Below are positions 25 through 62,832 of a DNA stretch of 64,000 bases, piece by piece. The first letter of the stretch is position 1; the number at the start of each line of letters is the position of its first letter. The notes beneath the pieces were generated by a model. It did not search any database. It was not told the origin of the DNA and saw only the letters and a list, made by a program, of their open reading frames with translations. This stretch comes from Dimorphilus gyrociliatus (Eukaryota > Animalia > Annelida): assembly GCA_904063045.1 (NCBI GenBank), contig CAJFCJ010000019.1:1999700-2063699 (forward strand), written 5' to 3'. The position numbers were made by a program, and so were the translations under genes.

Positions 25-1707
25 ATGTCGAAAACTTTGAAAGATATTCCCTCTCCTAAATCTTGGCCTTTGGTTGGTTGTTTACCGCACTATTATCAAC
101 AAGGTTTTGACAAACGCCATCTAATTTTAAACGAATTCGCAAGGGAGTACGGCAGTATCTTCGTTGAAAATTTAGCCTTTTTAAAGAACGCTATTGTTAA
201 TGATATCCAAGAATATTCGAAAATCGTTAAGGCGGATGGGCAACAAGTCGACCGTATTCCCTTAGATCCCCTACTCCACTACAGGAGGAGTAAGGGTTTA
301 AGCGATGGAATTGTAAACGGGTAATATCTATAGAAAGTGTTTATATATTTATATACAGTATATCTACACACAAATATATAAATATGTATATAAACATAAT
401 TTCTATCAATATCTATAAATAAACCATTACCTCTGCAAAAAAAACTAATAAATTTGTTTATAGAATCGGACCGAAGTGGTACGAATCCAGACAATTGGTC
501 AATAAGAAAATGTTAAGTAAAAGTTTCGCAGACGCCTTTATTGAACAATTGCACGATGTTGCTATCGACTTTTGTCAAAAGTTGGAAAATGACAAACAGG
601 ATACGGATTTGATATTCGATTTGGAGTTCTTTATCGATAAATGGGCCGTTGATAGCTCTTTTATATTTCTTTTTGGTAAACGCCTAGACTGTCTAAAAGG
701 AGACGACATCGAATTCGTCCGTAATTTACAATCGGTTTTCGACATACTACACCAACTTCTCTTTTCAATACCTCTCTACAAAATATGGCCAACCTCTACA
801 TGGAGAGAGTTCGAACGTAGATGCGACAAATTGTTCCAGTCTGCTTTAGAGTTATGTCAACAAGTAAATATTATCTTTGCAGTACATATTCGCGGTAGAG
901 TGTATACAGAAAATATAATAAGGAGAAAAAACAACGAAAAAAAAGAAAGAATAAGCTAAAAAACAAATTTACAACGCTTTTTTATCCCTTTTTTATTTCT
1001 AATGTTTTACTATACTATACACATAGAATCAAGTTGAAAGTGAAACGTCAACCTCACCCAGCTTGATGAACTACCTATTGCTTGATAAAAACCTATCGAA
1101 ACAAGTTGCAGTTGAACTTACGGTTGAAATGTTAATGGGAGCCGTTGAAGCAGTAAGCGTCTATTTTGAATTGTTCCTATATATAATTTACAAATGCTTC
1201 CCTTTAACAAACATCCGCTGTATTACTATGGTCTCTCTACTGTCTGGCTACGAACGAGAATTGCCAAGAGAAACTCTATCAGGAGATCAAAAACGCAGAC
1301 TATAGAAACATTAACAACATAACATATTTAAAAGCTATTGTTAAAGAAACTCTTCGTTTGTACCCTGTAACTTACTCAACCAGTAGGATCTTGAACAAGG
1401 ACACAGAATGTGGAGGTTATGAATTGCCCCGAGGCACACATGTCCAAGCCAATTTGTACACTATGGGAAGAAATGAAGATAGATTTCGCAACGCGAAAGA
1501 ATTTATACCAGAAAGGTGGCTAGGGGACGAAGGGAAAAATAATTTGGTATTCTGCAATTGGATTTTTGGACATGGTCCAAGACTATGCTTGGGAAAGCGT
1601 TTAGCAGAGGAAGAAGTGTACTTAGCAATTTTTGAGGTAAATCTAAGTAGAGTGATATGACTTTTTTGGAGCTTTGAAATCCGCCTAATAGTCACGTGAC
1701 ACAGAAT

Positions 1708-23478: not shown

Positions 23479-26400
23479 TTATTCGTTTTGTTCGGGTAGA
23501 ACATAGGAAATATCATCCCATGGGTGTCGATACAAGCCTTGTTTTAATCTCTTCTGGTCAAGGAAATGGCCAATGAATCCGATGCTTCTACCTAAAACAA
23601 ACAAACCGTTTAGTGCTCCAATATCTACATACTGTTGAGCCTCTTCTGCAGTAAATCCCCCACAATGACGCAGGAGGTCAACCATAGCAGATCCGATGAA
23701 ACCGTCAACATTCAGAATCAGATTAGGTTTCTTTGAAGTTGTAATCTTTTCAACTTCACATGCATAATCTAAAACTGGAGTGGCAGGGAAATGCTTTTTA
23801 ACATATTCTTTCAGAATGACAACACGTTTGTCTGGGTTATTTATTGACTTCACTCGATGGCCAATACCCATAATTAGTTTACCCTTTGCCCTCATTTCGT
23901 TGACAAACTCCATCGGAATCTTTCCAGTGTCATATGCTTCAGCAAAAGTCTTTGCTGCCTCATCTAAAGCCCCTCCAAAGCGATCACCAATTGTCAAGAG
24001 ACCGGATGTAAGAGACGATATCAAGTCTTTACCAGCTCTTGCACAGACGATCGTATTATGCGCGCCCGAGACTGCAGGTCCATGATCTGCAGTAACCATG
24101 AGAACCATTTCGATAAATTTACAAGCATAAGGAGGAAGTCGTCGCTGAAACCACAAGAGTCCCAATACTCCACCTAAGCCTAAATCTTTTTCAAATATTT
24201 CTGTTATTGGAACACCAGCATACAACAACTCCTGCCCTCTCTCGTCACAGATCGACGTCATAAAGGATGCAGGTTTACGTATTAGGCCTAATTCTCTTGC
24301 CCAGTTATAATCCATTGGAACTGTTGGTGGAGCAACTTCCGGTTTAATAACTATATCACCCTTAGCCACCAGCTCATCAAAAGTTGATTTAATAGAATCA
24401 CCCAGTTCATCGAAAGTTCTTGGAACAACGGCACCGGCTTCTGCAAGTGCTTTATTTTTAGAAACAGCAGTTTCTCTCTCTGCTTGAGCACAAGATCCAG
24501 CATGACCAAATTGAACTTCAGACGTGAACATGTTGGCACAAGTTCCAATACACCAAGCAACAATGGGTTTTTTAATCTGTTTTTTGTTAAGTGCTTCAAC
24601 TATCTTATACTCTTCAACACCTCCAACCTCACCTAAGAGTACAAGCATTTTTACGTCGGGACATTCATTGAATCGTAAAAGATGATCAACAAATGTAGTT
24701 CCTGGGTATCTATCCCCACCAATCGCAACTCCTTCGTAAACACCATCGGCGTTCATGGCGATAATATTGTTCAATTCATTACTCATTCCACCCGATCTGG
24801 AAACGTAAGCTATACTTCCTGGTCTGTACAATTTCGAAGATAGAATGTTGTCTAACATTCCTCCTGTGTTACCAATTTTGAAACATCCTGGCTTGATACC
24901 ACCAACAGTAGCTGGACCAATAATAGTAATATTTTTCTTCAATGCTTCTTGATTTATTTTTCGAGTGAGATTTTCTGGAATACCTTCGGCTATTATAGCA
25001 ATAGTTCGGATTTGACTATAGCCCATTGCTTCTATAGTTGAATCATACGCTGATCGTAATGACGCAAATGATACAAGAACATCTGCGTCGGAATGTTTAG
25101 CGAAGCAATCAGACATTTGTTTGTAAACTGGAATCAGAATTTCCTTGTGACCCCAATAAAACTTTTGTTTGTGGTCACCAGTAAAAGGGTAAATCATAGC
25201 AACAACAGAGGGTGAGCGTCTTCGACAGGAATAGTCAAAGTCAAGCATTCCTTGTACAGCTCTAGATTGTAAACCCCAGATAACGCATTTCGTTTCTGTA
25301 GAAAACATTTGCTGCTTTTCTGATAGAGTCAATTCCGGAATTGCCTCTGGAGCAGCCTTATTCGCGTCATGAGTAGTGCTGGTTTTGGTCGACGTCTCCC
25401 CTGGCAAAACGAAATTGGCAGTTGTGTTTTGACGTTTTGGTTTACTTCTTGGCATTTCTCTCTTTCCCAGTGCCATGGCCACTATTCCTGTCATATGAGT
25501 TTCAGGACCGAAAACATGAATGGGTACACCCAATGTATCCCCAAGCTCGGTCATTACACGCAAACCTTCTTGATAATTTGGACCACCCCGCCTTACAAAA
25601 ATTGAAATATTCCCTTTGATTAAACGAGTTTGAAATTCTCTCAAAGCTTTGACAATTCCTTTAAAAGTAGCCGCGACATTCGTAAAATTAGCTATGCCAC
25701 CACCTATAATCAAAACTTTTCCACGATCGTCTATTTCTTTGGTCATTATAGATAATAATGTTTTGGCATACTCATATGTTTGCTGTTCACTCGGGGCTCC
25801 GCTATATTCACCGTAATTGGCTAACTCAGACGCTCCACCCAATTCGCATACAGTATCCGCATAAATAACCGAAGCTCCACCTCCAGCAACCATTGTCCAA
25901 ATTCTACCTTTGGCATTCAAGATAGTTAATTTCAAAGATGCACCGCTCTTTGCGTCCAAATCGGCGATATACGCTTCCTCTTTGGTTGCGTCTCTTCCAA
26001 AAGGGGGTGGAAAATCGATCTCTCCCCAAGCCTGCTTGCACAAATATTCGGCGCACTGATCTAATTTTGCAGCCAAATCGAGAACATAGCATTTTCCAGA
26101 AGTGACAACTAGAGGGTTGATTTCCAAATACGTAAAGAAGAGATCCACATAAACCTTGTACAAGGCTTCAATAAAATCGATCAATATTCCCTGTCTATCC
26201 TTGCTCGCCTTTGAAACTAGCCGTTCGAGGTCTTTTCTAGAAGGCTTTTGTCCAATTGGAACTTCTAATTTAGACGCTTTGGCATCTACATCACCAATTT
26301 CTACACCACCTTCATGATGGAATAAGATAATATCCCCATTTCTATGACTATATACGCAAACGTAGACTTCATCTTCTGGTTTATGAGCACAAAACGGTTC

Positions 26401-27359
26401 GATAATGAAGTTCGTTAATCGACCGCAAGCCTTTCCAACCTGACAAAATCGACAAATTATTAGTATGATTATAGAAAAAATTTTAAAGCATACAATCAAT
26501 TTCAAAGACGCATATTACAGTTATGCATAATTTCACGCTTCCTAAAGCAGTAAATATAAGGGTGTCATGCATCAAATTAGTCCTAAAAATCTACGTCTCT
26601 CAAAGCCAATTTTTTGTCAAGATTATAATCAATTCTCTAATTGCCTTTAAAATTACTGTTTGATTATAACAGTCTCTGTTGTCACGGAAACTTATCAGGT
26701 TGGTCTGAGCGGAATGATAAAATACTTATTTATAAAGTCTAGCTATTTGTACTTGTCAAATGAGCTTTTCCCTATTATTTGTTTTTTTATAAATATTCGC
26801 TTGAGCTAAAATATCTCTGTTAGCGCATAAATAGCTTAATTTATGCTTTATCTCCTGATCTCCTACCAATCGATGTCTATTTGTAACAGCACAGCACTCT
26901 CGAAGACGATTGAAAAATCAATAAGACCTGAGCCAAGCGGAAAGTACAACATTATCATTTATCTAATCCGATACACTCAATTGACTCGAACTTTTTTATT
27001 AATTTAACTGACTTACTTTTGTTTCTTTGTTTATTCTCTCCGCGATCCATTGCTTGCATTCACCCAAATCACAGTTGACCTTAATTAGGCCTAACTTTCC
27101 CCTGCGTTTGATTAGTTGATCTGGTTTAACAACTAATTTCTGAATAGAACACAATCAAAGATTGTAATGAATGGAACAGTAGTCATACATTTAGATGTTA
27201 ACTAACCGTGTTTGATAGCCAAGCATGTTTTGCAGTCAGCTGTGACCATTCTGTTTTATCATTGAATGAAGCACACATGCTGGGAGCTGCAGCTTCGCAT
27301 TTTAAATGCTTATTTAGAAGCTCCTTTCCTATATTTTCTCGAATAGCTTTAGCTGACAT
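23479..27359 (-). CDS. ACLY: ATP-citrate synthase; two small 5' exons (ATG 27359; 27140-27017) plus one ~3 kb exon 26439-23479
   Basis: MSAKAIRE; [18 protein letters not shown]; [19 protein letters not shown]; QFGHAG phospho-His motif; [11 protein letters not shown]; [10 protein letters not shown]. Confidence 0.98.
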
Positions 27360-37519: not shown

Positions 37520-40500
37520 CTATTTCCACTGGGACCAATTTTGCTCGCATTGATTCCAAGTGGTGGGGACCACGTAAGAGGTGACGTCCGCTGGATGCCA
37601 GTCTGTCCAGGTTTGGGCGAGCGTCGTTGAGGGAGGCTGCTGTGGTACAGGAACAGAAGCGACAGGTGATTGCTGGCGGTGGGCTCTCTCCGTTCCAATC
37701 GGCATGGGCAATTTGCGTTCTTTGCCAATATAATTTTCTATTACAAAAAATACGCAATCAGCGCATAAAATATTATATAGTAACCTTGATTTTTAAAATA
37801 AATACCTGTAACGGCAGTTTCGCCCATAGTCATTCTTCCAGTTTCAACAAATATTGGCTCCCTAACATTATTCCATGCTGTACCAAAATCAGGGTTAACG
37901 AACCGACTTGTTGTAATTCCAGAGCCATATGCCGTCGTAGCCGGTGGCGGAACAACAATTGGACTGTAAGTTCCGCTACCTAAGAATGCATTTTCATAGG
38001 TCGACTGTGGATGTACTTGTACTTGCGGCAGACCCTCAGCAGCAACTTCAGCAAATTTCTTCCTTTGCTCATGGTCATCTTCGCATGGCTTCTTTTCCAA
38101 AATTTCTGACACATTCGAAAGACGATGCTGAAACGGCGAAAAGTGCATCGATGTGGTCGGCGGTGGAGTGCACCAAGTGGAAGAAGTGGTAATAGGCGAC
38201 GAAGTTGGAGCAACGCCACTGCTAGGAGTCGCCTGATAAGATGGTATTGGAGTCACAGAATCAGTGGTCATCATCTCTCCTAGATTCCAGGCAGGAGCCG
38301 AGGAAATTGATTTAGGAGTTTTAGGTGTCTTTGTTTTAGACGAAGCTGATTTAGGCAGGGAATTAGAAGTACTAGTCAACGGATTGCTAGTTGGTGTTCC
38401 AGAGACACTTGTAGGCGTTCCATTTAATATTGAAGAAGGTAATTCGACTATAGGAACTTTAATTTTTTGTGCCGACAAATGCTCCAAATCCTTTGAAGGA
38501 TCATGGATAAGCTGCTCAATTAAATGTTGTGCGTCTCGTATGTTCTCTGCTGAGCCCTTTATTGTTATCATGCGATCAACGCATCCTGCCTTCTGCTTCT
38601 CTACTTCTATATGAGCGCCTGACAACTCTCTAATAGCATTAATGTTGCAACCTCCACGCCCAATAACCCGACTAATACAGGATGAGGCAACCTTCACCTT
38701 TTTGGCTCTTGTGCTCTGTGGTTTCCGAGTGACCTCCTTCCAGCCTTCATCTCGTTTTACTGACCTCTTCGGACTAGCAATCGACATTTTCTCTGGTGTC
38801 TTCAGGGGTTTTCTCGTTGTCGTATATGTTACAGCCGTCGAGGCCGCCAAGTTCGATGACGAAGATAACAATTGGACCAATGGAGAGGATACTGTTAAAA
38901 GAGATGATACTACTGAAGTTACAGCACTTTCACAAGTCACATGTTTTGCCCTTTTTGATCTAATATTATTAGCTCGCCTGGAAGAAGGGGAAGGTGTAAT
39001 TGGAACTGCTCCGTTCTCTATCGAACCATTCATTTTACTCGTATTGTTATGTAAAGGGGTAGTTGTCGTTTTAATAGGACCAACCGTTGAAACAGTAGTT
39101 GCTTCTGGTATCTGTTCAACAAGGACTAAAGATATCGCTCGACCATTTTCGACTATTTTTCTCGGCGGCTCAGGAGATGATATCTTAACAAACTTTTCTT
39201 CATCGTCTTTTGCATCTGGCGTGTCTTTGTCGGATTTTCCCTTCTTTTTAGCCTTTCTTTTTTCCCGCTTACGTTTCGCTGTCTCCTTCTTGTTGGCTTC
39301 GTGCTTCTTTTCCAAATCCAATTGCTCTAAAAGCATAACAGCATTTTTGTTAGCCTCTTGTGCTTGACGTTCCTTTGCTGCAATTATTATTTCCATACAC
39401 TGTCGACATTTTTTAAGTTTTTCTTCTTCTTGAGGTGTAGCTGGATTTTGAGTGGCAATAAACCTTTCGCATTCCTGGTCAAGAGGAAATTGCTGAACAT
39501 GTTTAACAAGCCACTTAACGACCTTTACATGACCGTTCCTAAAAGCTGCCATTAAACAAGAAACTTTTCGATTATCTCGACTGTCAACATCTGCATATCG
39601 GTTGACTAAAAGTTGAACGACATCTAAATGACCACCGTGGCATGCTAACCACAATGGAGAATTGCCTTTCTTGTTTTTCACCTCAATTGTCGCACTCCTA
39701 TCAAGAAGAAGCTCAACAAATCTGCAATGGCCCTTGTCAGCAGCGATAGTTAAAGCTGTATCTCTCGATGAGGGGACTGGAGAGGCGTTTACGTCAGCTC
39801 CGTGATCGAGTAAAACCTGTCCAACTTCAACATAACCACCCGATGCAGCCTCCATAAGAGGTGTTAGACCAGTCTTTGCTCGATGTTCTATATTAGCTTT
39901 TCGCTCCACCAGTAATTTTACTACTTCATGTCTACCTTGGAAGCAGGCTAGTGTTAATGCAGTATTGCGGTTTGTCTCTATCTGTGCGTTAATATCTGAT
40001 CCCATTTCCAAAAGTAATTTCACTGCTGCTGTGTGTCCGTTCATCGCAGCAAGCATTAATGGTGAAATACCTAATTTTGAACCAGTCCTCGAATTGATTT
40101 CGGCTCCATGAGAGAGAAGTAGTCGTATAATATTTACGTAACCTCCCGAAGCAGCCAAACTAAGTGGTGTATAATCCGAAACATTTCGGTGCTCTTTATT
40201 AGCGCCTTTTGACAAAAGGTATTCTACAACTTCCATTCGTCCTCCAGAGCAAGCTAAACTGAGGGGTGTGTCTTTTGTTCGCTCACTTTGGGCTTCCATA
40301 TCTGCTCCATGGTTATTTAGGATGTCAACCACTTCAGCATGTCCTGCAGTTGCAGCCAGTATTAAGGGAGTAAATCCCTTCTTATCTTTATGCTCTATAT
40401 TAGCTCCTCTCTGCAGAAGTAGCTTAACCAATTCACTATGACCTCCGGCACAAGCCAGAGTAAGGGCTGTATCATGGTTGCTTTCAGTTTGGGCATCAAC

Positions 40501-43500
40501 GTCTATTTTTGGGGTAACAGATTGACTTGTCGTAGATGCAGGTGCGACTATAGCGGGTACCGGCTCTTCTGAAGGTTCTGGTTCAATTATCTGCGCGTGT
40601 TTTTTCTTCTGCTTCTTGGCATGAGGCAGGTCCGAGCAAGTCGGTGGCACCCCATGAATGTGCTGCTTTTTTGCACTGGTAGGAAGAACAGTCTGAGTTG
40701 AAGAAGAGGCCATGTTGGTATTAGTAGGCGACGATTGCAAGTTTTGATGTTGCATAGTCAACTGCATTAGTCGATTTATGTATTTTAATCTGTCCTCTAA
40801 CGCTTCTATTTGCGAATGAACGTCATCCAGTTGTGTGACGTGGTCTGTGCTATCTACTTGTTGTCTAACCAGAGCTTGGTGATGTCTAGCAGTTTGCAGT
40901 TGTTGTTGCAGGAGCATTGACTGTTGAATAAGTTGCTGTTGGGCGTGAGGATGTTTGAATATTTCTGAATCGGGCTTAGTTAGGTCAGATGGTAAAGGTG
41001 TAATTACAGGAGCTTGTTCATTTTGCTGTAACCATTTTTCCAACAATTCTCTGTTCTCGTTATCCTTCATACGTTCGACAAATTCTTTCATGGCTCGTTG
41101 ATGTTCCTGTGCACATTCAGCTTGACTTTCTATCAAATCCGGCGGTAGTATACGGACTCCATCGTCTTTCCGTAATATTTTTTCTATTTCCGCTTGATCA
41201 CAGTTTTCCTGTATAATTTTATATTCATCTTCCATTTTTAGAGAATCAGTTAAATTTTGCAGTTGGCGTACTAAACATTGAATATTTGAGTCGCTAGGAT
41301 CTTGTGATTTTAACAAATCGCTTAATGCTTTCTTTCTTTCCGCATGAGTTTCGTTCAGCTCAATAGTTTTTATCAGATTACTCAATAGATCTTCTACGTC
41401 CATTTGGGGATTTTCACCGTTTGGATAATTTGTAACTGCTGCTTTCATGGCTGCCTGTAAATCGAAATCAGGAACTGGTGTGCTTGGAGGAGGTGGAGGG
41501 TGTTTTCGTTGTGCTCGAAGAACATTTCTAACGACGGCTGCTTTGGGGGTTTGATCAGCAGAAGGTGATGTATCTTGAGGTGTGGGGGCCGGGACAATAT
41601 TCCTTAATCCTTGGACGGGCACTCTAGACGAATCATTAAGTACATCGACATTGTTCGTCGGAGGCGATGGACAATCCAATAAGATGTTAACAATGGAAGT
41701 ATGACCACCTTTTGCTGCTTCAATTAGCATAGTTGATCCATCTTTGAGTTTATGATGAGGATCGGCTCCATGCGATAAGAGAAATTGAACAACATCTACA
41801 TGCCCGCCTGCGCAGGCCAAGGATAAAACTGTATGATCGTTATTTGACGTAGATCTATTGACGTCGGCACCCTCTTTGACCAGAAATTCTACAGTTGATA
41901 AATGTCCGGAACGAGCAGCCTTCATTAGAGGAGTTCTGCCACCTTCAGATTCATGTTCTAATTTAGCATTACGACTAACTAACAACTGTGCAACTGCAGT
42001 ATGACCGTTCTCACATGCATAAGTAAGAGCTGTATCTCCAGTACTAGTTTCATGGTGCACATTAGCGCTGGCATTTAATAAAAATTCTACAAGTTGCAGA
42101 TGACCCTCTTGTGATGCCTCCATTAAGGGAGTGCTACATCCTAACTCTAGATCAGCTCCAGCTGTAATGAGAAAATTTGCAACATTCAAGAAGCCACCGC
42201 AACAAGATAGTGTCAAAGCTGTTTCTTGTGTTTCTTCGGTCTGGGCGTTTATTTTGGCTCCATAACTTAATAAAAGAGCTACCATTTCCTCGTGTCCCTC
42301 TCTTGCTGCCTCCATTAAAGGTGTATATCCTTCATCGTTAACCTCTTCCAAATTAGCCCCTCTTTCTATTAAAACCATTGCTAAATCTGTATGACCACCA
42401 CAAGCTGCTAATGTAAGAGGTGATTCAAAACTTTCGGCAGGCATATTGACTTGGGCTCCACTATCTAATAATAATTTTGCCACTTCTACATGACCATCCA
42501 TGGACGCTTCCATTAAAGCTGTATGCATTTCATCTGTTTTGTGCTCTTGATCAGCACCTGCACTTAAGAGAAATTTAACCATTTCTAAATGTCCCTTATA
42601 ACAAGCTAGAGTTAAGGCGCTTTCTTTAAATTCATTAGAATGGGTATTTATTCCTGCTCCGTAATCTAAAAGTAGTTTTGAAACAGGAACGTGACCGGCT
42701 GATGCAGCTTCCATAAGAGGAGTATGTCCATTTTCATTTTGTTCTTCGACGTTGGCACCAGCTTCAACGAGAACTTTAACTACGTCTACATGACCGGCGC
42801 ATGCAGCATAATGCAGAGCTGTATTTCCATTAACGGAGGAACCATTTGATGGTGATGTATTGCTTGATGATTGTGCATTGACATCAGCGCCATGCTTGAG
42901 AAGAAGTTGAACGCAGTCGGCATGCCCATGGACAGCTGCTTCGAATAGGGCAACAGGACTCTTCATCTTAACTTTTCCAACTTCTAACAATTCTTTAACT
43001 AAATTAGTATAACCTGTAGCGCAAGCAACGCTGAGGAAGTTGTCACTATCATTCAGTGCATTCAACAAATGTTTCATGTACTTGGTTTTGTGAGCACCTT
43101 CTGATTTCAGTTGCTTTGTTCTATATATATAAAAAAAAATTTTCGACTATACATACAATTTCTAAGTATATCAACTTACAGTATTCGCCGGAACAAACTT
43201 TTTACATCTAGGCTTTCTTGCGGTGGACTGTAATATTAGCTATTTTTTATAATTAATAGTTTAAAAAATGAGATACAAGTACCTTCCAGGAGATGATTCA
43301 TTCCTCGGATTTGAATTCAGACTAGCTGTTGCTTCGTCTAAAGCAAAATTCATGGTATCCGTCAAGCACTTTATCACTTTTTCATCTTTAAAATCGGTTT
43401 CATCGTCGACACCTATTTCCAAGTGCGTTTTAACGTACTTTTGCTTATTAAAAACATTATACATACCAGCTGCATTTAGTAACTCTGTTAAATGTTGCTG

Positions 43501-51655: not shown

Positions 51656-51728
51656 AGCCCCCGGGGAGGTTCGAACTCCCGACCCCTGGTTTACAAGACC
51701 AGTGCTCTAACCACTGAGCTACGGAGGC
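51656..51728 (-). tRNA. tRNA-Thr(UGU)
   Basis: GCCTCCGTAGCTCAGTGGTTAGAGCACTGGTCT-TGT-AAACCAGGGGTCGGGAGTTCGAACCTCCCCGGGGGCT. Full cloverleaf, A and B boxes, followed by a T-run terminator. Confidence 0.98.
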
Positions 51729-57455: not shown

Positions 57456-58723
57456 CTTACGCTAATAAGCAATATCAAATGAACTATTGAAATCAGGTGA
57501 AACTTTATCTAGAAAAAACAGCCTTAATGAATTGTTTTTTTTACGTCGTTATTTATTAGACTAGAGAAAGGTTGTAATTTGTTAATTAAAATATTTCTTT
57601 TGTTGTTTTATTAAGTTCCATCAGAATTTTTTTCACTGATTAAAGGATGATAGTAAAGTTGGATTTGCTTTCAGTTCTATTCTAAATAGAATAAAAAACA
57701 ATATATATATATATAATGTAAACAAACATAGACAATGAAAGAAAAAGAAGGAAATGAAGGAAAATTTTTGCTAAAAATATCTTTTTATTTATTTCTTTTA
57801 TAGATTTTTTTTATTTGCTTTTTAATCTTATCTTGACCTTTTTATCTTGCTTTTCAAACAGCTTTTCATGTTTTATTCTTATCTTTTCTTTTTCTACAAC
57901 ACAAAATTACATATCTTTTCCGTCTCTCTCTCTCTCTCTTTGTCTGTTTGATATTTTCCTCATGTTAACTAATCTTTCTCTATGTTTTACAGACATTTGG
58001 AAAAATGATATGCATGATCAAGAAGAACCGGAAAACTTTTCATTTTCTTTTATATATGTTCGTAATTATTTTTCAAATTTATACTTCACTGGTTAAATTT
58101 CGAATAGGAGATAAATAAAACAGATTCGTTATCAGTTACAATTATTATTTCTTTTATGTTTTGTATTTTCTTCGCTGATATTATAAACACTATTTTATCT
58201 TCGCTATCCTATCTATTTCAATCTCTTTCTTTTTCTCTTTCCCTTCCTCTCCGTCAATTACTCAATATCATTAATTATAGTAAAGAAAGCTATTCCAGAA
58301 TTTCCTTAACATCAAAAGGCTTGTGATCTAAAATTTAGTCTTATTATTATTCGCTTTATTCTCTTTTTTCCACTGTCTATTTACTCCTTTATTTGTTAAA
58401 GAATTCTCGTATTTACCTTTGTAAAGTGCCTTTTTATATACATTTTCTTTTTAAAGATCTGAAATTTTACTTGAAATTTTCCTTACACAATTCATAAAAA
58501 AATAAAGGACTAAGGAAAAGACCATACTTATTCCATTATTGATTTTTAGCAAAGCATAAACATTCTGTAATGAGTTATAAACATTTCCTCTATATATTCG
58601 TAATTATATGGAGATAAAAAGTATTTTTATAATTAGAATACAGAGAAAATATATACACCGTATATACAATATATATATCTATATTAATGTAACTAACGCC
58701 ATCTGGTTTTTTATTAAAATAAA

Positions 58724-58792
58724 ATTGCATCAGTGGGGCAACAGACATTCTTATCTATTTGAGGGATCCCTTGACGAAGTACCCACTTCGCC
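58724..58792 (-). pseudogene. Degenerate copy E of the vault-RNA-like gene
   Basis: Keeps GGCGAAGTGGGTACTTCG and CCCCACTGATGCAAT but has lost the terminal stem and the -24 TATA element. Confidence 0.6.
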
Positions 58793-58878
58793 TTTTTTTC
58801 TATTTCAACATATTCTGCAGCGTGAATTTACATTTATTCCATCTACCGTTTGGTATATAAATTTACAATTACCATTAA

Positions 58879-58951
58879 ATTGTTTTGCGCCGATGGGTTT
58901 GTAACAAGACTCTATTATAATTAGTAGGATTAAATCCCATACCTTACCAGT
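58879..58951 (-). pseudogene. Degenerate copy F of the vault-RNA-like gene
   Basis: Keeps the 3' motif CCCATCGGCGCAAA, a matching ATGGG in the 5' half, and the TATA-like gctatataaa at 58976 with the same spacing as intact copies. Confidence 0.5.
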
Positions 58952-59156
58952 TCGAAGATTTTCAACTATTTCAGAGCTATATAAATAGAATTATATTCGA
59001 TTGAATTTCTCAACCGATTGCAATATATTAAGCAAGAACGAGTCATTTAAATACATGCTTACTTATGTAAAATTCTTATCAGGTATAGAAACATCATTAA
59101 AAACCATTTTAATTAGATTAGAAAAAAGAAAAAAAAGAAAAAAGTAAAAAAAAAAA

Positions 59157-59248
59157 GTCGGTTTGCGCCAGTGGGGAACTAAGTATTCGAAGTGTTCATT
59201 CAATCTTTTTGTATTTGAAGTAAGAAGTACCCACTCGGCTAAGCCGGC
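59157..59248 (-). ncRNA. Vault-RNA-like Pol III small RNA, copy A (92 nt)
   Basis: GCCGGCTTAGCCGAGTGGGTACTTC...TTCCCCACTGGCGCAAACCGAC plus T10. A box TAGCCGAGTGG; ends base-pair; upstream TATA. Vault identity is inferred from similarity to vtRNA ends recalled from memory. Confidence 0.75.
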
Positions 59249-59271
59249 TCAGAGAAATAACGATGTTAACA

Positions 59272-59282
59272 GCAATATAAAG
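59272..59282 (-). promoter_or_regulatory. Upstream TATA-like Pol III element (CTTTATATTGC) at about -24 to -34 of copy A, repeated for copies B and C
   Basis: Same offset in each unit; nearly the same motif lies at -25 of tRNA-Thr (51753-51763). Confidence 0.65.
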
Positions 59283-59413
59283 CAAAACGATAGATTGTTA
59301 ATTATTATAGAATATTCTATATTTACTTATATGGAGTAAACATACATTAATTATTAAATATACTAAAATGCTTGACCAAAGGAATAATTCATTAAAAAAA
59401 CAAAAAAAAAAAA

Positions 59414-59507
59414 GTCGGATTGCGCCAGTGGGGAACTAAAGAATTTGAAGTGCCTGTCCAACCTTGAGTTTCAATGAAATAAGAAGTACCCACTCGGCTA
59501 AGCCGGC
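59414..59507 (-). ncRNA. Vault-RNA-like Pol III small RNA, copy B (94 nt)
   Basis: Same 5' 25-mer; 3' CCCCACTGGCGCAATCCGAC plus T12; different central loop. Confidence 0.75.
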
Positions 59508-59667
59508 TCGAAGAAAAAACAGCGTTAACAGCAATATAAAGCAAAACGATAGATTGTTAATTGTTATAGAATCTACTATATTTACTTATATGGAGTAAAC
59601 ATACATTAATTATTAAATATACTAAAACGCTTGACCAAAAGAATAATTCATAAAAAAGAAAAAAAAA

Positions 59668-59759
59668 GTCGGATTGCGCCAATGGGAAACCAAATGGCTT
59701 GAAGTGACTATCAACATAAGTTCGCTTGAAATAAGAAGTACCCACTCGGCTAAGCCGGC
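59668..59759 (-). ncRNA. Vault-RNA-like Pol III small RNA, copy C (92 nt)
   Basis: Same 5' 25-mer; 3' CCCATTGGCGCAATCCGAC plus T-run. The C>T change keeps pairing as G-U. Confidence 0.75.
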
Positions 59760-59915
59760 TCAGTGAAAAAACGACGTTAACAGCAATATAAAGTGAACGA
59801 TGGATTGTCAATTTCTATAGAATGTACTATAATTCATATACATCAGGTAAAAGTACATTTATTATTAAATATAGTAAAATGCTTGACCAAAGGATATTTC
59901 ATGAAAAAAAAAAAA

Positions 59916-60010
59916 GTCGGGTTGCGCCAGTGGGTGAGAAAGCGTTTGAAAGGGAACTTCAAGCTTATAAACATTTCAATCTCATGAAGTACCCACTCGG
60001 CTAAGCCGAC
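59916..60010 (-). ncRNA. Vault-RNA-like Pol III small RNA, copy D (95 nt)
   Basis: GTCGGCTTAGCCGAGTGGGTACTTC...ACCCACTGGCGCAACCCGAC plus T12; perfect GTCGG/CCGAC terminal stem; unrelated upstream flank except a TATA-like motif at the same offset. Confidence 0.75.
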
Positions 60011-60603
60011 CTAAGGAAATACATACGATAGACCTCTATATTACTCTAACTTTAATAACACATCTTGTGTCGTAGTAGTTCGAATGGTAGGTTTAATTTA
60101 ATATTAAACTTGTCGGAAAGTCTTAATATATTTGTTGCATCAAGTAATTAATCCTTACTTTTAAATGTCTTATATATATTTATATACTGTATACTGTATA
60201 TTTACGTTTATACCTTTATAAATATCTAGAATTACAGAAATTTTATTTATATTACACAATAGCTCAATAGCTGAATACTCTGAAAATGGTTGAATTGTCA
60301 CGTGATCATTATGTTGTTACTAGCAACAGTGATTTCCCAATAGAAAATAAATCATTTTTTATAACAATTATATACTCTATTTTATTTCTTTTTCAGTAAA
60401 GAAAACATTGATAATTTTCAAATAATTTAACAATAGAAGGTATACATTTGGTACACATTGTTTACAAAATAAACATTTAACAATGAGAGAAGTATTTCTT
60501 AACAATGAAGCAAAATGATTTAGAAAAAAGTAAACGTAGTAATAAATAAATTTCATAAGAAAGCGAGAGAGAGAGAGAGAGAAAAATATCTGATTTTCCC
60601 TCT

Positions 60604-62832
60604 TTATTTTCTCTTCAAATGTGTCTTTTCCATCCACGGATAAATTAAATCACCCATTACTAGTTTCTTTAAGAAAGAAAAAATCTCCCAAGGTTCATTT
60701 TGCTCTAATCGATCATAGCTAATGAGTTCGTGGCATGAAGCTGCTTCCAACTATTAAAATAGTAAAAATTGTATAGGAAGATAGTTATAAATAGACGGAA
60801 TAATTTTATGTTATAATACATACTTTCATCCATAAATAGACAACTCCGTTTCTATCAGGTTCAACTACTTTAAAAGTTACTTTATCTAAAAATAAAAGAA
60901 CTAAAGAAAAACGAAAGATGTTCGTGTAGAAAACTTACCCATAACAGTTTTTGAACGAATCATTTTCAATAAAAACGAATAAAAGGGGATGCGATTGAGA
61001 AACATAACAAATTGTTGAGGTATAAATTGCACAATAAGTACCAATAACCGCAACTAAAAAGTTTTAAATACATTTTAATAAACACTACTTTATGAATATT
61101 ATTAAACTTACCAATGTAAAAACTGCATAATAGGTTAAAACTGTTGGAAACAGAAAAAGAATAATACAAAAGAATAAGGTCCCAACAAACAGTGTATCGA
61201 CATCGCATGACAAAGTATCTATCCTCTTCCTCAAAACGTTCTTCTTTTTACCTCGAAATAGTAAAAATAAAGAGGAAACACCTTTCATTTGAAGCTTATA
61301 TAATCTAAATAATAGTAAAAATATGGTTTATAACAATTCAAACATTTTTAGCGCAAATTTTTAATCTTTTACCTTGATGCGTAAACGTAAAAGCAGTATA
61401 TGTGCAAAGTCATCATATTAAAAATATCAATACAGAAGCTTATTTGATAGGAAACACCTAATACTCCTATCCATAAAGTAAGGTTTAGCATCATTGCAAT
61501 CCATGGTTTAATAAGATTCAAGTAGCCTGGAGAATAGAAAAGAGATTAAATTGTTTCTTTCACTACGAAGATAGGAAATTATTACCCATCCACAAATAGA
61601 AGTGATAAAGGAAAAAAGTTCCAAGAAAGTGACTCAATTGATAATTTAGCTTTAATCCAGCCGGACTTCCCATTAGCCATTTTATAAGAAGTCTTAAATG
61701 TTCAACAATACTCTAAATAAAATAATAAAAGCAATAATAAATAATTTTGCAGGCTAAATTAACAAACAAAACAAACATTAGCTACAAGAAGAAGTTCATC
61801 AGAGCACTTTTCGGTATCAAACATATCTTTTAAGAAATAGATTGTACATATTCCAACCACTATGTCTATAATTCGTCTAACAGAATAGTTTAATAACCTG
61901 TTCATCGAACGGATAATTGCAGGAGATGTAGATCAGCAAATTTGTATTATTTACCTCAAGGTGCATAATGGATTATTAATATCGTACTTTTTCAAGGATT
62001 GAAAACCCTGATAATGCTCAAGCAAATTCTTTCCAACAAATGTTAGCAAAATGATCCTTTTTAGAATACTATTCTTGATGCATTCCCTATTTGGGGAAAA
62101 AAATTATAAGTTAATTATTACTTATTGCTAAAGCTGGCAGTGTATAAAATAGTCTTACTCCAGACGAAATAGACAACGGGGAACCCAAAACACTATACTA
62201 AATATATGATACAGTAAATAGGTGAAAGCATTGTAAAGTGCACGTATTTTCCAGGGTTTAAGCATACACGAAGATGTGTCAATTACATCCAGAGAAATGT
62301 TACACTTTTGAGAAACTTTTTGTTGTAGATGCAGGGCTCGACTAAGCTGGTTGACGTGTGTACCTTCCATGAGTTTTGTAGCATTTTCCCCATCATCTAT
62401 CCAATCTGCAGCCGATTGCATCAACAAGGCAGACTGCTGTACATATTCTGCACTATATAATATAACCATTGCTTCACTACAATCCCAAACGGGGCTGAGA
62501 TGAATAATTGGCACGTCGTCTTTTTTTCTACATGCAACAATCTCAAAGCGAACGATATATGAACTAATGATCGATGGTACTGTCAAATCATCATTTCTAA
62601 ACCAAACTCCCAATTGTCTAATACTATAACCAAAGCCTTCACTCAGCTTGCTTTCTCGCAACCAATCTCTTATAGAACGAACATCTCCATTTCGAACAAT
62701 ACCTGTCACACAAATTATTCTAGTCTTTCTATTGCTCCAACCGATAAGATTACCCGTAGGGGCATTCATACATTCATAAGGAATGTAAATCCTAACGATG
62801 GGTTTGGGGTCATGAAATTCCCAGTTCGGCAT
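60604..62832 (-). CDS. PIGQ: GPI-GlcNAc transferase subunit Q (GPI1), multi-exon
   Basis: [11 protein letters not shown]...[12 protein letters not shown]; [15 protein letters not shown]...[23 protein letters not shown]. Confidence 0.93.

Follow-up and report, generated by a model that had tools for sequence, protein, structure and literature searches.

A compact tandem array of four vault RNA genes in a spiralian, probably annelid, genome

A spiralian, probably annelid, genome contains four tandem vault RNA genes (Rfam RF00006) that are probably active, with two decayed copies lying downstream of them; judged from the sequence, we put the probability of this reading at roughly four in five. 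The genes lie in a 64,000-nucleotide (64-kb) stretch of Dimorphilus gyrociliatus DNA, which is referred to as the window and whose coordinates are used throughout. Sequence and structure together place the genes in the family; that they are transcribed, which proteins they bind and what they do we only infer.

Results

Four tandem units match the Rfam vault RNA model

The array occupies positions 59157-60010 of the minus strand and comprises four tandem units of 95, 92, 94 and 92 nt, counted from the first G to CCGAC with the U tail extra.

59916-60010, minus strand: vault RNA gene copy 1, 95 nt, Rfam Vault 47.0 bits
59668-59759, minus strand: vault RNA gene copy 2, 92 nt, Rfam Vault 43.1 bits
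59414-59507, minus strand: vault RNA gene copy 3, 94 nt, Rfam Vault 47.0 bits
59157-59248, minus strand: vault RNA gene copy 4, 92 nt, Rfam Vault 46.4 bits

The units form a regular repeat with a period of ~250 bp, placing four genes in 0.85 kb, and with a U tail their length of 92-95 nt falls inside the range of 80-150 nt for vault RNAs. Their 5' 25-mer (GYCGGCTTAGCCGAGTGGGTACTTC) is identical in copies 2-4 and differs at one position in copy 1, the most divergent of the four, and the 3' motif CCCAYTGGCGCAAHCCGAC is common to all of them. A search of the 64-kb window with the 22-mer core of this 5' block (GGCTTAGCCGAGTGGGTACTTC), allowing up to three mismatches, gives four hits, against an expectation of 0 from 100 shuffles.

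The window was scanned against 4227 Rfam families. All four copies are full-length matches to RF00006 (model positions 1-99) at 43.1-47.0 bits, which is 9-13 bits over the gathering score of 34, with E-values of 2.5e-7 to 3.2e-6 each (whole 64-kb window, 4227 families). Five matches in the window lie above the gathering score, these four and one tRNA-Thr. The likeness to the Vault model reaches past the A box and takes in both UACUUC and the 3' GGCGC block; within the conserved 5' block the lone systematic deviation from the Rfam consensus is one U fewer (GGC-UUAGC versus GGCUUUAGC). A permissive scan of positions 58900-60300 (E up to 10) returned, besides Vault, three unrelated families at 14-19 bits, far below threshold, and the Y RNA model (RF00019) had no match there on either strand. 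Neither an Rfam tRNA match nor an ARAGORN prediction falls within the array. The sequence-only reading had proposed that these are vault RNA genes and that the Vault and Y RNA covariance models should be compared, with a better fit to another family counting against it. The comparison favours its proposal, as Vault passed in all four copies, Y RNA was without a match and no better-fitting family emerged at E up to 10; the RF00006 scores above the gathering score and the covariation of the panhandle described below both support the identification.

The array carries signals of a probable mixed RNA polymerase III promoter

Each unit has an A box at nt 8-18 (TAGCCGAGTGG), an exact fit to the Pol III A-box consensus TRGCNNAGTGG. 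A TATA-like octamer ends 26 nt before the first G of each unit (TAATATAG in copy 1, TTTATATT in copies 2-4), and a T-run terminator directly follows each gene.

60036-60043, minus strand: TATA-like octamer of copy 1
59993-60003, minus strand: A box of copy 1
59904-59915, minus strand: T-run terminator of copy 1 (12 T)
59785-59792, minus strand: TATA-like octamer of copy 2
59742-59752, minus strand: A box of copy 2
59659-59667, minus strand: T-run terminator of copy 2 (9 T)
59533-59540, minus strand: TATA-like octamer of copy 3
59490-59500, minus strand: A box of copy 3
59402-59413, minus strand: T-run terminator of copy 3 (12 T)
59274-59281, minus strand: TATA-like octamer of copy 4
59231-59241, minus strand: A box of copy 4
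59146-59156, minus strand: T-run terminator of copy 4 (11 T)

The spacing of the TATA-like octamer is constant in all four copies, although the upstream region of copy 1 is otherwise just 53-56% like those of the others. Within the variable middle of the RNA, conservation is confined to one island, CTTCRAR, at about nt 56-64 (CTTTCAAA in copy 1). This island is a poor match to the B box GGTTCGANNCC; it stands at the normal A-to-B distance and ~8-20 nt from the 3' stem, whereas the B box of the Rfam consensus abuts the stem. On these elements, the layout (a TATA-like sequence ~30 nt before the probable start, internal boxes and a long T-run) is that of a predicted mixed, internal-plus-upstream Pol III promoter. 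The human VTRNA1 genes also have a mixed promoter, with an upstream TATA and internal boxes. The weak B box of the array is in character, because the B boxes of lophotrochozoan and Fasciola vault RNAs are reduced too, to GTTC-like remnants (PMC8824774).

Much of this architecture had been described in the sequence-only reading. Its four minus-strand units of 92-95 nt with a common 5' 25-mer and 3' motif are present in 4/4 copies, its T-runs of at least 7 T measure 9-12 T, and the TATA-like element that it placed before each unit is the octamer at the constant 26-nt spacing. Its caveat of a degenerate B box displaced from the stem was also justified, CTTCRAR alone being found, ~8-20 nt away, and the interrupted end-to-end stem that it drew is recovered by folding (the minimum-free-energy structure in 3/4 copies, the centroid in copy 2).

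The paired ends are kept by compensatory changes

The ends of each unit form an outer stem (GYCGG/CCGAC) and an inner stem (GCC-AGUGGG/CCCACU-GGC). Copies 1, 3 and 4 adopt the resulting panhandle as their minimum-free-energy fold, whereas in copy 2 only the centroid shows it. Copy 1, at a minimum free energy of -29.9 kcal/mol (z = -2.96), is the only one whose fold clearly beats that of shuffled sequences; for copies 2 and 3 there is no advantage over shuffles (z about 0). The outer stem is fully paired only in copy 1, through a U-A pair, where copies 2-4 have a C/A mismatch and the metagenome sequences described below have C-G. A C-to-U change in the 3' motif of copy 2 retains the pair as G-U.

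A metagenome collection (241 million records by its description) was scanned with the pattern GGCTTAGCNNAGTGGNTACTTC. The pattern occurs just three times, each time within an element that scores with the Vault model (54.9, 52.2 and 43.2 bits).

658-767, Ga0081606: metagenome Vault element L006, one of the two best-scoring (54.9 and 52.2 bits)
788-890, Ga0081606: metagenome Vault element L007, one of the two best-scoring (54.9 and 52.2 bits)
78-208, plus strand, JAAUXW010304803.1: metagenome Vault element L008, 43.2 bits

All three share with the array the 5' block that is shorter by one U (GGCTTAGCNNAGTGGNTACTTC) and the 3' GGCGC block, and the same helices are kept in them by compensatory changes; their middles, in contrast, are unrelated to those of the array. 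L006 and L007 are paralogous vault RNA loci from one organism, with flanks alike on both sides of the gene. The centre of L008 is tRNA-Met(CAT)-like (Rfam tRNA 45.5 bits; ARAGORN 103-178), and in this element vault RNA ends enclose a tRNA.

We aligned the four array copies with the three metagenome elements (n=7) over a panhandle of 16 pairs. In this alignment 95.5% of the panhandle cells are paired, compared with 35-48% after shifting the 3' partners by 1-3 columns, and four pairs have changes on both sides. Column 5/123 is C-G, U-G, U-A or A-U, and column 21/107 is G-C, A-U or U-A. The observed covariation score was reached by none of 500 shuffles, and RNAalifold, supplied with no structure, predicted 15 of the 16 panhandle pairs.

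These elements suggest how the RNAs could be made. RNA polymerase III would start one or two bases before GYCGG, directed by the A box, the weak B-box-like CTTCRAR and the TATA-like octamer upstream of the start, and would stop in the T-run, giving an RNA of ~95-100 nt. This RNA is predicted to fold as a panhandle, its conserved 5' and 3' ends pairing with each other and leaving the middle of 45-48 nt open to variation. If vertebrate vault RNA is a guide, the paired ends may act as a protein-binding platform (for TEP1 in mammals); some of the RNA may belong to vault particles, and different partners may be bound by the middles, which are specific to each paralogue.

Decayed units and the evolution of the array

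We built a lineage-specific covariance model (R1) and ran it on the window. It scores the four intact copies at 92-97 bits and finds nothing else convincing in the window except one 16-bit match just downstream of the array. This match is one of two decayed units, the other having been recognized by alignment.

58881-59033, minus strand: decayed fifth unit, between copy 4 and the sixth unit
58715-58798, minus strand: decayed sixth unit, lineage model 16.3 bits (E 0.0019 in 861 nt, E 0.24 in 109 kb)

The fifth unit retains, in the correct order, the TATA-like GCTTAATATATTGC (59020-59033), CTTCGAAC (58950-58957) and the 3' motif CCCATCGGCGCAAA (58884-58897), and is without its 5' end, outer stem and terminator. 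The sixth retains GAAGTGGGTACTTCG and CCCACTGATGCAAT and is without the outer stem. Four intact units and two relics therefore give a birth-and-death picture of the array.

No further copy was detected in the other 63 kb of the window by the 22-mer with three mismatches or by the lineage model. Contigs from host DNA run X1 (211,358 records) were compared with the array at a likeness of at least 80%: nine were placed, all at least 95% alike, and none was 80-95% alike. Contig depth in this run is 77-188 inside the array versus 220-248 in the single-copy flanks, bearing in mind that depth is not equal to copy number and that part of the records was filtered out. The run also contains a variant unitig over 59223-59368 (59304 A>G, 59314 A>C, 59316 T>A) whose depth is roughly half that of the flanks. 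Together with the low depth of the array, this unitig may reflect allelic variants of the array.

Among units 2-4 the spacers are 80-92% identical. The middles of the RNAs (45-48 nt), by comparison, are 60-68% identical among copies 2-4 and 54-57% identical to copy 1, against 49-51% for shuffles. In the youngest pair, 138/150 spacer positions are identical (92%) versus 32/49 positions of the middle (65%; Fisher p = 2e-5). This contrast could be due to promoter constraint or gene conversion in the spacers, to diversifying selection on the middles, or to both. Diversifying selection was considered because simple neutral divergence after duplication would not predict such a contrast between spacer and middle; as an account of the central domains we regard it as doubtful. 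The preservation of ends, A box, TATA spacing and terminators beside nearly randomised middles points to selection, rather than decay, acting on the four intact units.

Genomic surroundings and host

The window contains animal genes (ATP-citrate lyase, an ankyrin-KH protein, a C2H2 zinc-finger gene and a ferroportin exon) and has a G+C content of 29-41%.

23479-26505, minus strand: ATP-citrate lyase (ACLY), single uninterrupted 1008-aa ORF
37741-43077, minus strand: ankyrin-repeat KH-domain protein, single uninterrupted 1778-aa ORF
51656-51728, minus strand: tRNA-Thr(TGT), 71.2 bits, 7.4 kb from the array; no Pol III gene besides this and the array was detected in the window
62155-62832, minus strand: neighbouring exon of 225 aa

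The single-ORF ACLY and ankyrin-KH genes have exons longer than is usual in animals, in keeping with a compact genome.

Spiralians provide the best named relatives of the ACLY protein (Capitella, Mya, Babylonia, Pinctada and Haliotis; 73-75% identity), and one further relative, 92% identical, is found in Logan assemblies only. In an ACLY tree, which contained no echinoderm or hemichordate row, a long branch carries the window sequence and this relative, and it lies outside the chordate, arthropod and mollusc clades, which are well supported; the placement of the pair within Spiralia is weak, with a 46/70 link to nemerteans. The expectation of a probably protostome host, voiced when the array was described from its letters, thus appears to hold, given the spiralian identity of the best named ACLY relatives and a tree position outside the chordates. 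The 225-aa exon has a 76% identical homologue in Logan contigs. Neither a Vault match nor the 22-mer is present in the relative's contigs for this exon (2.8 kb, ending before any vault RNA) or in its ACLY contigs, and a search of the protein collection with a 50-aa ORF that reads through copy 3, aimed at the vault RNA loci of relatives, gave no candidate.

Alternative explanations

The units could belong to a different Pol III panhandle RNA, Y-RNA-like or particular to the lineage, that is vault-like merely through its A box, paired ends and U tail. We consider this improbable. In its favour, most of the conserved 5' block is A box, a feature of type-2 Pol III genes in general; the B box is degenerate and the association with vaults putative. 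However, the scores exceed a curated Vault threshold by 9-13 bits, the likeness continues beyond the A box into UACUUC and the 3' GGCGC block, Y RNA has no match at E up to 10, other families stay far below their thresholds, and three unrelated contigs, which score as Vault too, carry these features in combination as well. That the Vault model matched AT-rich DNA by chance, a view backed only by the general caution that RF00006 is a short and low-information model, is of negligible probability: four independent matches within 0.85 kb have E-values of 2.5e-7 to 3.2e-6 each, the 22-mer is expected 0 times, and covariation is present. This explanation is refuted by the RF00006 scores, the 22-mer shuffles and the covariation.

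It is also improbable that the array is a tRNA-derived repeat (a SINE or a satellite) or a row of silent, dead pseudogenes, a view to which the tRNA-like A box, the tandem units with 80-92% identical spacers and the two clearly decayed neighbours lend some weight. Against a repeat, the array has no tRNA-model or ARAGORN match, the other 63 kb of the window hold no additional copy (22-mer at three mismatches; lineage model), and among the host contigs none has a likeness of 80-95% and the depth is not above that of the flanks. The sequence-only reading had named hundreds of dispersed copies as the mark of a SINE; none was found in the window or the host DNA contigs, and a SINE is unlikely given this absence. 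Against dead pseudogenes, the ends, A box, TATA spacing and terminators are intact in four copies despite near-randomised middles. We favour an array of four probably active vault RNA genes, with two relics downstream.

Discussion

Vault RNAs had been taken, when the array was described, to be on record essentially only from deuterostomes, so that a protostome cluster would extend the family. This claim does not stand, as RF00006 holds entries from Lottia, Helobdella and Macrostomum (PMC8824774). The premise arose because, in reviews, most of the vault RNAs listed still come from deuterostomes and Trypanosoma brucei; one such list names frog, human, sea urchin, trypanosome (Trypanosoma brucei) and fish (PMC10491885). 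A 2022 study used the vault RNAs of Lottia gigantea and Helobdella robusta from RF00006 as search seeds, made a comparison with the Macrostomum lignano entry, and described five vault RNAs of Fasciola hepatica, four of them clustered, which are expressed in all stages and enriched in extracellular vesicles (PMC8824774). The locus is thus an added, probably unannotated, member of a known family, in a phylum already catalogued for vault RNA. Neither vault RNA nor major vault protein is mentioned in the Dimorphilus genome paper (PMC7854359) and four of its supplementary files.

The closest comparisons are with the lophotrochozoan members of RF00006 (Helobdella robusta, Lottia gigantea and Macrostomum lignano), which share with the array the family model and a spiralian host, Helobdella being also an annelid. 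They have in common a conserved A box followed by a (T)TACTTCG-type sequence, a panhandle and a weak B box; unlike these three, Dimorphilus is not named in PMC8824774. The vtRNA1-5 of Fasciola hepatica likewise come from a protostome, occur in several copies and fold as a panhandle, with a B box of GTTC-like remnants. The four clustered Fasciola genes, however, span 133 kb, whereas those of Dimorphilus fit in 0.85 kb as a ~250-bp repeat, and the Fasciola RNAs come with data on expression and vesicle enrichment, while those of the Dimorphilus array are predicted from sequence. The human VTRNA1-1, VTRNA1-2 and VTRNA1-3 genes (PMC10491885, PMC8287541) resemble the array as a local, multicopy Pol III cluster of ~90-100-nt RNAs whose paired ends are conserved and whose central domains are specific to the paralogue, with an A box inside the gene and a T-run as terminator. 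The array differs from them in its 5' block, one U shorter than the Rfam consensus, in the displacement of its B-box-like motif from the 3' stem, and in its surroundings: the window shows no evident protocadherin gene, and a C2H2 zinc-finger gene is the first neighbour on the upstream side.

The genes are found by a routine Rfam scan and lophotrochozoan members are already catalogued, and the array opens no fresh question. It is unusual only in the stronger conservation of the spacers relative to the middle of the RNA, a contrast that could suit tests of the purpose of the variable domain. If diversifying selection were true, the array would consist of vault RNAs with different recognition loops on a constant protein-binding handle, and the set would be renewed through the birth and death of units. 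The array provides a clean, compact vault RNA cluster from a miniature annelid genome, in a family for which reviews still list mainly deuterostomes. Sequences of the major vault protein are reported from annelids and bivalves and none from arthropods (PMC3762200), and the array favours an origin of vault RNA, as of the major vault protein, before the protostome-deuterostome split.
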